Source of the DNA: Utricularia gibba
Lineage: Eukaryota > Plantae > Magnoliophyta
Length of the DNA: 64,000 nt
NCBI GenBank assembly: GCA_002189035.1
Contig: CM007991.1
Coordinates: 4,154,001-4,218,000 of the forward strand
Reading direction: 5' to 3'
Positions 4,523-11,133 of this stretch are shown in pieces. Position 1 is the first letter of the stretch, and each line of letters opens with the position of its first letter. The notes under the pieces are model-generated. The model was not told where the DNA came from and ran no database searches. It saw only the letters and a list, made by a program, of their open reading frames with translations. Made by a program: the position numbers and the translations under genes.

Positions 4523-6417
4523 ATGGATCAGTCTGATGCAAGACTGGAAATGTCGGTTTCCTTTGGTAGGTTTGAGAACGACGCACTTTCATGGGAGAAA
4601 TGGTCATCTTTCTCACCGAATAAGTATCTGGAAGAAGTTGGAAGTTTGTCGACTCCTGGATCAGTAGCGCAGAAGAAGGCATACTTTGAAGCTCACTACA
4701 AGAAGATTGCAGCCCAAAAAGCCGAGGCACTGGAACAAGAAAAGGCGACGAGCCAAAATGTTCCGGATCTGGATGTTTCAAGTGATGAAGCTTCTGTTGA
4801 GAATTCATGTGAGATTTACCATGGATCAGGAAGCTCGAATGGTGCAAAGCTAATTGAACACAAATTTGAGGAATTTTGCTTCAGTATTTCTCCTCATGAG
4901 AGTATTAACAGGGAAATATTGGATGACAGTGAAGCCACATCCTCTGGAGTCTTCGAACCTGGTTCATGTCATACTGCTTTGATGGATACAGTAACCTGCG
5001 ACGATGAACCATTAAATGATGTGATTGCAGTGAACGATGGTAGCTCTGTAGTTGAAGAAGCTCCTGATGATTTGAATGGTTTTGCTCATCTTTCGATGAC
5101 AGATGCTGAATCCAATACGATTGATTTTTATCCCAAGTGTTCTCCGGGTACTGCTGCTCTAGGGAGACCTGTTCCAGTTGAGGTGGTGGACTCCAATCCG
5201 AATGATGCTGGAAATGTGGCTCCGAAGGTAACATTGGAGACATGCAAGCATTTTATCCATTGTTTTTGGTGATGCTCATCATGTTTTTTCTTGTCTTTTT
5301 CTGTTTTGCATATGATTTCCAGATAACTCGGACAAAGGAGAGAAGTTTATCTAGCAGTAAGAAGAAAGTAGCATCACCAGTGATCAAGCAAACGCCTACT
5401 TCTATGAATTCAAGGACGCGGCGAATATCCACTCCAACCTCTGCTGCTCAATCTCTGAAGCAGAAGAATGGAACGCCACAGCTACAAAACAAGAATCATC
5501 CTGTTGTAGATTACAAAAGAAGACTAGTGCCCACATCATTGCACATGTCCCTTAATACGGGCTCTGCAGTTTCTTTAGGTGACCCATCTTCGATGATGAG
5601 GAAGTCGTCAATAATGGAAAAGCTGGGGGATAAGGATATTGTTAGACGTGCTTTCAAATCTTTCCAGAAGAGGGACTTCGCTTGTTCCGTTTCCCAGAAT
5701 CCAAGTCCATTGAAGAATGTAAGCGAAGTAGCTTGATGACATTGTGCTGTATTTCTTGTGTCTCATATTGTACTGCTAATGCAGGAGTCACCCGCTGCCA
5801 TCAAACCGAAGATATCAGTTCCTCGCACACTCGTAAAGGTGAATGGAAGGTAAATCATTTCCTGCATCACCTTCACTCTGAAATTGATGTGGCAAAAAAA
5901 CTGAGGGTCATGTTGAATCCCCTCCACTTCTGATGCACTTGCTGATTTTGTCCTGTCTGGTGCGTATGAATTCCAGGCTTAGTGCATCTACTCAGAATCC
6001 TGAAAAACGTGTAACGCCAAGATATCCATCTGGAGCAAGATCAAACCCTCTGCCTTCAGGGTTAGACTTTTCTCTTCCCTGGTGATGATATCAAAATGCT
6101 TTCTATTTAAAGTCATTTTGATTCGTACTGTAAACGCAGATCACGTAAGATGCTTACCCCTGATAAGAAATATGCGACTGGTTCATCACCTCATACCTTG
6201 ACGAAGGATGAAAGAGCCGAAAAGCGGAAAGAGGTATGCTTTTGCAGTGAGCTAGATTTTCTATCTCTGGTTCCTTTCATGGTATACTCCATTTCGGCTT
6301 AGTTATGCGTTTAACGACATGAACCTGAAGCAGTTCATCAAGAAGTTGGAGGCAAACTCAATTGCCAGAGCAGCTGAAAATGCTCACCGCAGCACAACAT
6401 CCAAGCCGAACTGTTGA
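4523..6417 (+). CDS. WVD2-like 7-type / TPX2-family microtubule-associated protein (~475 aa)
   Basis: Exons 4523-5227, 5323-5718, 5785-5849, 5977-6060, 6140-6233, 6334-6417, all in phase. Hallmarks: N-terminal SVSFGRFENDALSWEKWSSFSPNKYLEEV...VAQKKAYFEAHYKKIAA, central PTSLHMSL/MEKLGDKDIVRRAFKSFQ, C-terminal DERAEKRKEFIKKLE. Confidence 0.88.
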
Positions 6418-6870
6418 CTGTTTCTGATGACTTACATCACTCGAACACCGATATGCTGCCATGCAAGTTGGTGTGTCAAGAGCAAAGAACTTCATCGTCC
6501 ATCAAACTAGTGAAATTCTTCGTTGCTGTGTTAGAAGAGGTACTTTATAACAAGCATGATATGCATACTTTTCTGTAATATGTCTGGGGGTGCATGCCAT
6601 CTTCCTATCTGGGGGCACCTCAAGGCTTTAAAAAAAATCATGGCGATTCTTAAGATCTACTAAAAATCATGGCGGAGTTGTGCCCAACTTTTACATTGGA
6701 AAGTTAGTTGAAGTCCATAAGAAAAAGAAAAGAGTATCCGTTATCTCAATTTACTCCTTTAAACTGTAAAATCGATGTCAAGTGTTTTACACTCGAGAGA
6801 ATTAAATACGCAGCAGCGGCCATTTCTTCACAATCTATACAAAAGCTCACCTTCATTGACGGGTGGTGAG

Positions 6871-8914
6871 TCATCCTGCCTGGGATTTCTCCTGGTCACT
6901 AGAACTATTCTGGGAAGCATCAACCATGAAATTTGTCGGAAGTTTGGGGAACTTGAAGACCCTTGGAGATGATGCTAATGATGTATCGGCAAATGATGAT
7001 CCAGGCTTCCTCTTCTGTACGTTTCTTGCAATCTCAACACAGGCTTGATCAACCAATGTTAAGAAATCATTTGCAATCACAAATAGGGAGAGAGGATTTG
7101 TGTCACTTAATGATCCAGGGTAATAGTATCCTGTGGTTTCTTTCAAAAAATCCATTACTCGGGTTCGCTCTTCTTGGATCAGTTTCATCTCAATCTCAGC
7201 TGTTGCAAGGAACCCCCTCATTCTTTTGTAAAATTTTCCTTCAGTTCCACATTGCACCAGCATTTGCTGTACATCAGACATCTGGGTTGCTAAGCTTGAT
7301 ATTGTCTGAAAAAGAGCATCATGGTCTATGGCTGCTACTTTTTTGACGTTGGGGAATTCTGAACTTAGACCACCTACAACTGGCAGTCCCAGTATCATGT
7401 AGTCTCTTTCAGTATCACTGTTCATCACTGAGGAATCGGAATCGCTTTCGCTATAACTCCGGTTTCTGTTAAGCACGCAGCGCTTTCCCTCAGAGCGAAC
7501 TATTTCATGGACAACAAAATGAAGGAGAGTTGTCTTTCCATCATAGCTTTTGACATCAGACAATTTTTTCAGAGCTGTGATGTTGAAAGCCTGCTTCATG
7601 CTTCCTCTTGATGCACTGGAGCTCAATCTTTCCCCAGACTTGAGAACAGCTTCCAAAAGCTTCAAGAACAGCCCACTGGCTCTTAGTTCTTTGCTGGCTG
7701 ACTCAATGAACTGTAACGATTCCTTAACTTGCAAAACCTTGGACTCAAATGTTGTCCTAAAGAGCATCACATTGAGACGAGTGAAGGCAGAAGGCAAATC
7801 CTTGATGAGATGATAGAGGAACGATTCAGCCTCTGCAAGTCTAGCGGGATCTCCATTGAATGCAACAAGTTGAGATGCTTCTTGTTGACTTGGAGCAATT
7901 TTTGCAAGCTTTTCAATGGTGTCTGTGTTTAATCCTTGTCCTTCAATCAAAGCATTAGTGATTTCTTTACCTGTGACACCTAGAGACTTGAGCAAAACTG
8001 CAGTGCTCTGAGATTTAACTGGATCAAAGATGAAAATATGGGAAGGTGGGGATGCTTTTTCCCCTCTGGGAGATTTCCTGTTAGCCGCCACGGATCCAAA
8101 CAAAGCTTCCATGAGATCCCCTTCGTATCTGCATTGACAGAGTAATAAGGCAACATCCTAAACCTAAAAGAAATTGACTTTCGATGGAAAAGATTAGAGT
8201 CTGAAGGAGATACCCTTTTTCAATCTTGCGCAACTCCATAGAATGATCAGAATCTGCAGATTTGGGTATTCTCAATGAAGCATCGGACATCCGCGGTGCC
8301 TGCGGAGGTGCAGACGGCGGAGGGGTTACTTGTGTATTCTCCGACCACACAGGGCTATCGGAAGTAGAAGATTCGCCTAGGAGTAGAGGGACTTTTTGTA
8401 CTTCCGACGGCTTCCTTCTTTCTCTGCCATCAACCGTTACTCTCTTCTCTTGTTCCATGTGCTCCTCCTTCGACCCCTCGTAAATCTGCTTCTTGAAGCT
8501 GACGCTATTGGCTTCCATCTTCTTTAAATACAAAACATCCAAACCATTCTCATCCACGATCACCCCCTTCAAATTCGAATTCACGCGAAGAAACCCATCG
8601 CTCACCGGCAAAGCCTCAATCTTCTCCCCTCCCCAAAACTTCCTTTTTCTGAACCGCATAAACAAAAATAAACCAAGCGCAAATAAACCCACAGTGGCAG
8701 CAAACGTCGCACCTACAGCTATCCCCACGGCCCCACTCCTCGATAGCCCAGTCGCCGTTGGCTCCACCGGCGGTGGCGGCGGCGGCGGAGGCGGTGGAGA
8801 GGTGATAGACGGGTAGTAATACGGGTAATCATATCCCGTCGAAAATGTTTGTGAAAATGCGCCAGTCACATCGGAAACGAAGAGAAGAATCAAGAGACAT
8901 ACGCATGCACCCAT
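6871..8914 (-). CDS. Class I, group Ie formin (FH4/FH7/FH8-like), 652 aa, divergent FH2
   Basis: Exon 1 is 8914-8214 and exon 2 is 8128-6871, with an 85-nt phase-2 GT-AG intron. Order of parts: signal peptide, extracellular S-P10, TM helix (AVGIAVGATFAATVGLFALGLFLFM) plus RFRKRK, GOE motif KGVIVDENGLDVLY, then FH2 (GDLMEALFG, KLSDVKSYDGKTTLLHFVV). Confidence 0.92.
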
Positions 8915-11133
8915 CGGAAGCCCGAACTCGAATCCAACCCTTAATCTCCGTCGACTCAAGCTGCCGCCGTCAGCTCAAAGCGATGCTGGTACCGTGTATT
9001 TAAGCTGCCTTCCGCAGTCCCACTTTTCTCCTCCTGGAACTTCAACAACGAAGAAGATAACTAAAATACATTTTGAAAATTAAGCACCGTCTTTATCTAA
9101 TAATCCAGGTTTAAATTTAATTAATTTCCAAACCATTTTTTATTTAATTTATAGGTATTTATTTTCGCCAGTACATTATAATAAATTTTTTTAATTAAGT
9201 GGCTGGAGTAGATGAGCTCACATTCATTTTCCCCTCAATTTAATTATATTTTTCCCAAAATAATAAAAATTCACAACCAACCACCTTATCCAATCATAAT
9301 TGACGACGCAGTCAACTGTACAGCGCACATCCGGCATTCAAGACGTATGCAATTTACATGATTTAATATTTTCCGATAAATATATAAAAATTAAATTAAT
9401 TTCATCGCTATAATGCTACCAGAAAAAAAATTGAAATAGTTTTTTTTATTGACTTTTGGAAATTAAATAATGGAAATAATAGGAAATGATTTTGTTAAAT
9501 AAGGATGGGGGCGTTAGGGGGGCTGAGGTCAAACTTCCGAGGACTGATAGCCCTGTGTGGTTTGACTTGGGCCAAGTCAAACTTAGAATATTGTATTCTA
9601 ATGGGGCCAAAGTGTAAACTCTAGAAACTTGTGGTTGGCTGACGGGTGCGGTTGGCGCGTCGCATCTAGAACACAGGCGGACGTACAATGAACGTTGGAC
9701 TCGGACACCTTGACTCGGCCTGCGTTTCACACTCTGGACGCCCTAATTGTCAACCCTGATTCAAAACTTGTCTGCATTATTGAGATTTTTAATATTTTTT
9801 ATTTAATTATTTCGCTTTTATGTCTAAATGTTTACTATTTTTTTAATGTAGAATTGGGGTGTCGCTCTCATGGATGATATAGACACTTTGTTTTTTTTAC
9901 CCCAATTGAATATTATTTTTCACAGATTTAATAAAATAACAATATAAAAAAGTTTTAATATTTGGTTTTAATTAGAAATAATATAAAATGGTATGATAAC
10001 GAGGGCACGTTCAACGTTGATTTAAACGAATCCGTGCAAATAAAAAATACCATAATTTATTATATTATTTTAAATTCATTTAATTCCATCATGAAACCTT
10101 TAATTAATTTAAGAACATGTTCACCTTGGGCTTGTAAGCCCATTACGTTTTTAAGCCATAGCCCATTTAACTAATGGGCTGAAAATAAAAGCATTTTGAT
10201 TTCATCAATGGAACATTAATTTTTTTGGGCCGTAGCCCATTTAATTTTCTTTTAATGAGTTGGCTGCTATGGCCCACTATGTGGTCAATGGGTCAAATCG
10301 ATGCAGTGATGTCATTTTGGATGTAGTCAACTACCGTATCTCTGACTTGGACGATATGCGCATGATGCATGTACTTGGTAAAGACTTTTTTTAATAAAAT
10401 AAAATAGCTATGTATGTTTAGGTTTCATTATATAATTTGAGGTGCATCTAATCAATAAATATTCAATTTACTAAATATCAAATATTTTAATTTCTCGTAT
10501 TCATTGATAGTTAACAAATTTTAAATAATTACAATGATGTAAGTTGAAATGAATTTCACACATTGAATTATATTGAGCCTGTTGTATATTTTGAATCTAT
10601 AATTTGAATTATTTAAAATATAATCAATGCTGAGATTATGTAAGAATAAAATCAGTTTAAAATTATAAATTATTTTATATAATAATATAAAGTTATATTA
10701 TAAAATAAATTATATATTATAGAGTTTAATATATTAAATTACATATATAAATTAAAATTATAGGATATATTTTTTAAAGTAGATAAAAATAAACAGAATA
10801 TTTTTTTAATTAATCTATTATTTATGTATTAAAATATAAAATTAAAATTAATAATTTATTAATTTAGTTATAGACTATGAATTTTTAGTTTTGTAGAATA
10901 TAATAAATAATATTTTTAAAATAACTACAATGATGGAAGATGCAATGGATTTCACAAATTGACTTATTTTGAATTGTGTGATTCTTTTTATTAAAAAAAA
11001 TAATGAAATTTATTACATACTTTGAGACAGATATTCTCTTGTCTAACCAATGAAAGATGTCGACGAGGTTAGCCAAACTCGTATCCTTGTATTCACATTC
11101 ACTCTCATTTCTACCGAAAATCAAATTAGTGGT

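Follow-up and report, generated by a model that had tools for sequence, protein, structure and literature searches.

A transmembrane formin of group Ie without lasso and post motifs in Utricularia gibba: a probably non-nucleating gene kept under selection

Can a formin that has lost the contact through which FH2 domains pair still be kept by selection, and in what role? FH2 domains are treated as obligate dimers, and the contact between lasso and post is nearly invariant across eukaryotes. In this contact, the lasso of one subunit is wrapped around the other's post and lodges two aromatic side chains in its pockets, and these aromatics were found in all animal formins surveyed (PMC5047451). 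The lasso is needed for functional dimerisation and nucleation, and FH2 domains without it are mainly monomeric, with nucleation abolished (PMC3302767). The question is raised by a gene on the minus strand of a 64,000-nucleotide stretch of the genome of the bladderwort Utricularia gibba (assembly GCA_002189035.1, contig CM007991.1, positions 4,154,001 to 4,218,000), here called the window, which has lost both sides of this contact together with FH1. An earlier note on this DNA had proposed a non-nucleating or monomeric membrane formin, perhaps a microtubule/wall linker or a dominant-negative regulator. The reading that we favour, with somewhat more confidence than doubt, is that of a lineage-specific derivative of the group Ie class I (AtFH4/7/8-type) transmembrane formins, which is selectively maintained, non-nucleating and probably monomeric.

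From sequence reading and the list of open reading frames (ORFs), the gene has its ATG at 8914 and a coding region at 8914..6871 in two exons of 701 and 1258 nts, which together give 1959 coding nts, i.e., 652 codons and a stop (Table 1). It is a formin, as its FH2 domain is detectable by both profile and fold. Exon 2 matches the Pfam FH2 profile (PF02181) with an E-value of 6.3e-72 and 243 bits over profile positions 46-371 of 372; because the match begins only at position 46, the lasso part of the profile is unmatched. The exon-2 product alone was also modelled with AlphaFold from a 50-sequence alignment, giving a mean predicted local distance difference test score (pLDDT) of 77.8, with most helices above 90 and the post loop (residues 172-178) below 50. 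The best 31 matches of this model in the Protein Data Bank (PDB) are all formin FH2 structures (mDia1, DAAM1, INF2, FMNL3, Bni1p and Cdc12, with E-values down to 2e-10), and the top PDB sequence match is 1v9d, the monomeric core FH2 of mDia1. Exon 1 gave no significant protein-family match. Among the elements that define a formin in the nucleator sense, the lasso aromatics, a GNxMN or GNxLN post and an FH1 with profilin-binding polyproline tracts are missing.

The exon products were aligned separately to 32 full-length homologs and to 119 homologs. A canonical lasso is present in about 25 of the 32 full-length proteins at the place where the window protein has RMSDASLRIPKSADSDHSMELRKIEK, in which no Trp is left; the alignment thus bears out the claim of the earlier note that both lasso tryptophans are absent. 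When a canonical Lamiales ortholog was used as tblastn query, its residues 137-273 matched nothing in the window, and reading all three frames, intron included, uncovered no hidden lasso. On these grounds we rejected a lasso or FH1 concealed in the intron, in a different reading frame or at some other place in the window. The post, GN[RQHK][LM]NAGT in homologs, reads GERLSSSA in the window protein, exactly where it had been placed (7621-7635), while the asparagines N449 and N452 (numbering of homolog P0005) are conserved in all of the 119 homologs (100%). At the knob, the replacement of Ile by Val is mild and conservative, and a neighbouring Asn has become Ser. The earlier note had counted this STAVL motif (7996-8007) as a degenerate actin contact; its position is exact and the Ile is indeed changed, but the strong replacement, Ile to Ala, is found in the related gene of Genlisea described below. 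The second member of the actin-contact pair, the post Lys, is retained in KLSDVKS.

These losses are specific. About 87 columns of the FH2 body are at least 95% conserved in the 119 homologs, and about 75 of them are kept in the window formin (including T625, Y628 and F689, which were misaligned and were corrected by eye as retained). Only five of these columns are altered in both the window and the Genlisea genes, namely N324 and I327 in the knob and N449, N452 and T455 in the post, and the lasso PLHxxK is also missing in both. From the loss of both Trp, of the post asparagines and of nearly all of FH1, we infer that the window formin is very likely unable to form the lasso/post dimer or to nucleate actin. 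In three annotated Apiaceae homologs (P0077, P0097 and P0098, from Heracleum, Apium and Daucus), the lasso is missing its first half and the knob Ile is replaced by V, with VWDEV and GNQMN kept; this points either to an annotation artefact common to the three or to another lineage in which the lasso has changed.

Could the degenerate motifs stem from the assembly or from the gene model? Contigs from four public runs were placed on window positions 6300-9500, where X1 is a DNA run, X2 and X4 come from one study and X10 from another. In contigs of X2, X4 and X10, 8214 is joined straight to 8128 and exactly 8129-8213 is absent. Since the X1 DNA contigs run unbroken through the intron, the spliced contigs derive from RNA, and the gene is transcribed, with splicing as in the model. 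A single transcript contig, from 8938 to 6819, holds one joint only, at the predicted GT..AG, hence no extra exon could supply a lasso, and a wrong gene model or missed exon was rejected. The X2 and X4 contigs show 0 differences from the window across the coding region, and the X1 contigs match it except for one letter within the 6902-7969 piece. The degenerate motifs are therefore not read errors, a sequencing or assembly error as their source was rejected, and neither cDNA nor DNA contigs restore the lasso or the post. The stop-free frame of 652 amino acids that had been noticed is thus real, and it is also expressed and correctly spliced.

The genotype of X10 differs slightly from the window, with 25 substitutions listed that affect 11 codons synonymously and 12 nonsynonymously; none falls in the lasso remnant, and the nonsynonymous changes cluster in the C-terminal half. 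At 7601 (exon-2 residue 176), the Ser of the window is Asn in X10 (RGS to RGN), RGN being the canonical form, which implies that some of the divergence of the post block is very recent or continues to be polymorphic. An extra C behind 8937, in the 5′ untranslated region 23 nts upstream of the ATG, is present in X1 (DNA) and X4 (RNA) and not in X2; it is non-coding and is either polymorphic or due to a minor assembly error.

The nearest proteins in the collection searched are 55-61% identical and are named Lamiales ‘formin-like protein 4/8’, with a best match of 61%. As this collection contains no window protein, no other Utricularia and no Pinguicula, closer relatives do not appear in it and the date of motif loss is not narrowed; the comparison of altered genes covers two lineages. 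In the maximum-likelihood (ML) tree, the window FH2 groups as sister with M569_16486 of Genlisea aurea (P0015, contig KE535951.1) with support of 93/94, and the pair is nested in a Lamiales clade with support of 100/99. The two end branches measure 0.53 and 0.55 against 0.03-0.18 in other Lamiales, except for Penstemon at 0.41, which is partly mis-annotated (the P. smallii model P0037 jumps from the polyproline region into ALFGYVA, probably through a mis-predicted intron). Derived residues common to the window and Genlisea proteins (RLNVMLFRxTF, LPxSDGFxRVN, YMILGLP and T455A) argue that the sister grouping is real rather than a product of long-branch attraction.

Reading of the Genlisea contig in three frames showed that exon 1 ends in ...SSSLGEGSSSAMVSHK immediately before the intron, and the lasso is therefore deleted. 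The genomic DNA further gives the post as GSRLYPGAS, the knob as KSLAAAAVL and the Lys motif as KLSDVRS, in an intact frame of 687 codons. Like the window gene, M569_16486 has thus lost the lasso and the post (GSRLY) and altered the knob (AAAAV). Unlike it, M569_16486 keeps one P7 tract and the Trp of the GOE domain, and carries Ile to Ala and Lys to Arg where the window formin has Ile to Val and an unchanged Lys. Because the replaced residues differ between the two genes, the decay of the motifs continued independently after their split. The annotation of P0015 (L001:503-620) splices out part of the signal-peptide region, through which the contig reads in frame.

Is such a gene merely decaying? 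Pairwise estimates of the ratio of nonsynonymous to synonymous substitution rates (dN/dS, or omega) between the window and Genlisea genes by NG86 and YN00 fail because synonymous divergence (dS) is saturated, and ML codon models were used instead, with twice the difference in log-likelihood (2dlnL) as the test statistic. Over exon 2 (404 codons), omega is 0.158 in the set of window, X10 and Genlisea sequences, and omega=1 is rejected with a 2dlnL of 182; four canonical Lamiales genes give 0.099, a difference with a 2dlnL of 5.3. The contrast is marked in the post block, at 0.143 against 0.014 in the canonical genes (2dlnL 15.2), while it is marginal in the C-terminal half (0.19 against 0.10) and not significant in the knob half (0.162 against 0.115). 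Every FH2 block rejects neutrality, as does the GOE domain, with an omega of 0.30 and a 2dlnL of 19.6, whereas the FH1/lasso remnant (27 codons, omega 0.17) does not. Window and X10 compared with each other give an omega of about 0.26-0.32, drawn from few changes. Overall, the protein is under purifying selection, FH2 body, GOE domain and membrane anchor included, and the constraint that has been released is the one that normally freezes the post. The proposal that the gene is kept under selection is upheld by these values, which, together with transcription in two studies, do not describe plain decay.

The part of the protein upstream of FH2 has the layout of a plant class I formin, with a signal peptide, a Pro-rich extracellular part and a single transmembrane (TM) segment before the cytoplasmic part, as assigned by hydropathy only. 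The run of ten prolines (P10) precedes the TM segment, which places it outside the cell. On the cytoplasmic side there is no polyproline beyond PPP, whereas canonical relatives carry several P5-P8 tracts, and about 45 residues separate the end of the GOE domain from the end of exon 1, against about 135-150 in these relatives. The earlier description of a cytoplasmic FH1 reduced to TPPPSAPPQAP, with the only long proline run being extracellular, is therefore accurate. GOE was defined as the microtubule-binding domain of AtFH4 (PMC3820618); alignment to 30 homologs showed that its core KGVIVDENGLDVLY and the segment VQKVPLLxGESSTS are kept. Conservation of this core, and a tree that nests the gene in a clade whose members are named formin-like 4/7/8, assign it to group Ie. 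Hydropathy and alignment likewise agree with the retention of signal peptide, TM segment, GOE and KLSDVKS that had been reported. The change of Trp to Leu in GOE (DVLYW to DVLYL), which had been listed among the degenerate features, is real but is also found in the otherwise canonical homologs P0087, P0090, P0102, P0108, P0077 and P0097. It is hence a common natural variant and no evidence of degeneration, and was rejected as a sign of decay.

AtFH4, AtFH7, AtFH8 and Medicago SYFO share with the window formin the signal peptide, the Pro-rich extracellular part, the single TM segment and GOE, and have the FH2 intron at the same position, just upstream of MEALFG; all best database matches are named ‘formin-like protein 4/7/8’. 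The window formin differs from AtFH4/7/8 in its nearly absent FH1 and in the loss of the lasso Trp, the post GNxxN and the knob N. AtFH4 and AtFH8 are in vitro actin nucleators (PMC3820618), an activity that the window formin is predicted to lack.

Table 1. Features of the formin gene, in window coordinates.
Feature	Position	Strand	Basis or remark
Whole formin coding region	6871..8914	-	ORFs, sequence; transcript contigs 8938..6819 with one joint
Exon 1: signal peptide, extracellular Pro-rich part, TM, GOE domain, FH1 remnant, lasso remnant	8214..8914	-	
Predicted signal peptide, residues 1-22	8849..8914	-	Hydropathy >2 over residues 1-21; putative assignment
P10 run, extensin-like, residues 40-49	8768..8797	-	Between signal peptide and TM segment
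TM helix, residues 61-86, then RFRKRK	8657..8734	-	Hydropathy
GOE domain (group Ie microtubule-binding domain), retained	8345..8611	-	Alignment to 30 homologs
FH1 remnant TPPPSAPPQAP	8294..8326	-	Only PPP and PP left; tblastn null for canonical residues 137-273
Lasso remnant RMSDASLRIPKSADSDHSMELRKIEK	8216..8293	-	No aromatic residue at either lasso position
Intron, 85 nts, GT..AG	8129..8213	-	Skipped exactly by contigs of X2, X4 and X10; DNA run X1 contiguous
Exon 2: FH2 body and C-terminal tail; stop at 6873-6871	6871..8128	-	Pfam FH2; predicted structure
Knob helix motif KSQSTAVLL (canonical KSQNTAIVL): N to S, I to V	7990..8016	-	STAV at 8007-7996
Degenerate post motif GERLSSSASRG (canonical GNRLNAGTSRG)	7603..7635	-	GERLS at 7635-7621
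KLSDVKS, conserved actin-contact Lys kept	7546..7566	-	

Directly beyond the 3′ end of the formin gene there is another transcript (window 6300-6682), where RNA contigs of X2, X4 and X10 stop matching at 6332 and continue into unrelated sequence, consistent with a splice junction. The gap to the end of the formin transcript (6819) is about 140-490 nts. ORFs neighbouring the formin gene gave no Pfam matches when scanned as raw ORFs.

The window gene does not appear to be the only formin of its kind in the plant. Other contigs in X1, X2 and X10 match the window only at 8544-8574, i.e., over 31 bases of the GOE core, with flanks that encode NDVFVRKNWDLKGVIVDENGVNMVYWRIL. A second GOE-type (group Ie-like) formin, with a transcript encoding ..LKGVIVDENGVNMVYWRIL, is thus present as DNA and RNA in the same runs. 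Its contig depth in X10 is 73 against 18 for the window formin, depth being unsuitable for ranking expression. This second expressed formin may supply the canonical activity and may thereby have freed the window copy to change.

What, then, might the conserved protein do? Failing a head-to-tail lasso/post dimer, it would perform neither actin nucleation nor processive elongation, and would act as a monomeric ‘core FH2’ fixed in plasma membrane and wall. The retention of the anchor, of GOE and of the FH2 core points to a role linked to microtubules or membranes. The most plausible conserved role would be to link or stabilise microtubules at membranes through GOE and the FH2 body, with weak binding of actin at barbed ends or filament sides as a secondary possibility. 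This agrees in part with the microtubule/wall linker suggested by the earlier note, which is consistent with the retained GOE domain (PMC3820618) and, as a function, is putative. In addition, mDia2 goes on stabilising microtubules when it is mutated so that actin assembly (I704A, K853A) or dimerisation (W630A) is defective (PMC2364705). The elements missing or disabled in the window formin are the same as in these mutants, in mDia1 1v9d and in the Plasmodium Frm1 FH2 lacking its lasso (PMC3302767, PMC2364705). Engineered core FH2 constructs are mainly monomeric and non-nucleating, and some are inhibitory (PMC3302767, PMC2364705); the window formin, however, is a natural gene, is selected in two genera and has lost the pocket motif of the post side as well. 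FOZI-1 of C. elegans and its relatives similarly combine an FH2 under selection, without other canonical formin parts, with a long branch in a normal subtype (PMC5047451). FOZI-1 is, however, a zinc-finger protein that keeps the lasso aromatic pair as W/F (PMC5047451), while the window formin keeps its membrane anchor and no lasso aromatics.

Other explanations compete for the same observations. Strong conservation and predicted folding of the FH2 body, a retained post Lys and a knob Ile that has only become Val would all suit a formin that still nucleates actin, either dimerising by other contacts or clustered by its membrane/wall anchor, with the lost motifs dispensable; a Plasmodium FH2 without lasso does keep a weak tendency to dimerise (PMC3302767). 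Yet lasso deletion abolishes nucleation in the formins tested (PMC3302767), and here both partners of the contact are gone, including the post asparagines kept in 119/119 homologs. Moreover, no polyproline longer than PPP is left for profilin, and the Ile to Ala change in Genlisea corresponds to I704A of mDia2, which is defective in actin assembly (PMC2364705). We consider a working nucleator quite improbable. The retained Lys and the knob Val of the window gene would also serve a negative regulator, i.e., a membrane-tethered monomeric core FH2 that caps or occupies barbed ends, or binds filament sides, and so damps canonical formins. In mDia-type formins, polymerisation is inhibited by a core FH2 that lacks the lasso (cited in PMC3302767), and the closest sequence in the PDB is precisely such a core. 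Genlisea has nevertheless replaced both actin-contact residues, which makes it less likely that one function shared by the two genes depends on tight actin binding. As for the dominant-negative regulator of the earlier note, poisoning by heterodimers is unlikely since, with both lasso and post pocket degenerate, neither half of the contact with a normal formin could form. A damping role is, in our judgement, unlikely, though the least unlikely of these alternatives.

The gene might also be an incipient pseudogene, its function lost with roots and root hairs or after duplication, and its frame open by chance or because relaxation is recent. The motifs that are critical for function are lost, a paralogous GOE formin exists, omega is raised above the canonical value and stands near 0.3 in the recent comparison, with nonsynonymous changes clustered in the C-terminal half, and the FH1/lasso remnant fails to reject neutrality. 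Against this stand the rejection of omega=1 over a saturated synonymous distance and of neutrality in all FH2 blocks and GOE, the frames of 652 and 687 codons intact after the split, correctly spliced mRNA in two studies and the retention of most near-invariant FH2-body columns. Decay is the account to which we give the least credence.

Several points weigh against the reading that we favour, of a maintained, non-nucleating and probably monomeric formin. Its fit to the loss of lasso, post and knob in two genera depends on motifs defined in yeast and animal formins, and microtubule binding by the window GOE is a prediction from AtFH4. With only Ile to Val changed and the Lys kept in the window formin, actin binding may persist. 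Only two lineages were compared, and as the sister pair joins two long branches, long-branch attraction is possible; very high substitution rates are general in Lentibulariaceae (PMC5749785) and explain part of these branches. The omega values are approximate, given the saturated dS between window and Genlisea (NG86 undefined, ML branch about 2.5 per codon), and a recent omega of about 0.3, above the long-term value, would be compatible with relaxation that is still under way.

Group Ie formins have roles in root hairs, in defence and in symbiosis (PMC11194305), and Utricularia is rootless (PMC3141634). A literature search for formins in Utricularia found nothing relevant. One may speculate that the change came after roots and root hairs, the site of AtFH4 and AtFH8 action, had been lost. 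More tentatively than for the reading above, and with more doubt than confidence, we suggest that the rootless Genlisea and Utricularia possess a natural ‘pseudo-formin’, a monomeric non-nucleating FH2 scaffold derived from a group Ie transmembrane formin and selected for anchoring or stabilising cortical microtubules or endoplasmic reticulum at the membrane/wall, independently of actin and by means of GOE and the FH2 core.

The stakes are moderate, as divergent members are expected in large plant formin families and the function proposed here is putative. Being expressed and under purifying selection in two genera, the gene would be a natural separation-of-function allele, and it would provide a direct way to ask what the FH2 core and GOE do without nucleation, be it microtubule binding, capping or scaffolding. 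It may also serve as a case study in the repurposing of a cytoskeletal gene, in plants whose body plan is extremely reduced and whose molecular evolution is fast. If the suggestion of a ‘pseudo-formin’ is true, dimeric actin nucleation is not the only function for which the FH2 fold can be selected in plants.

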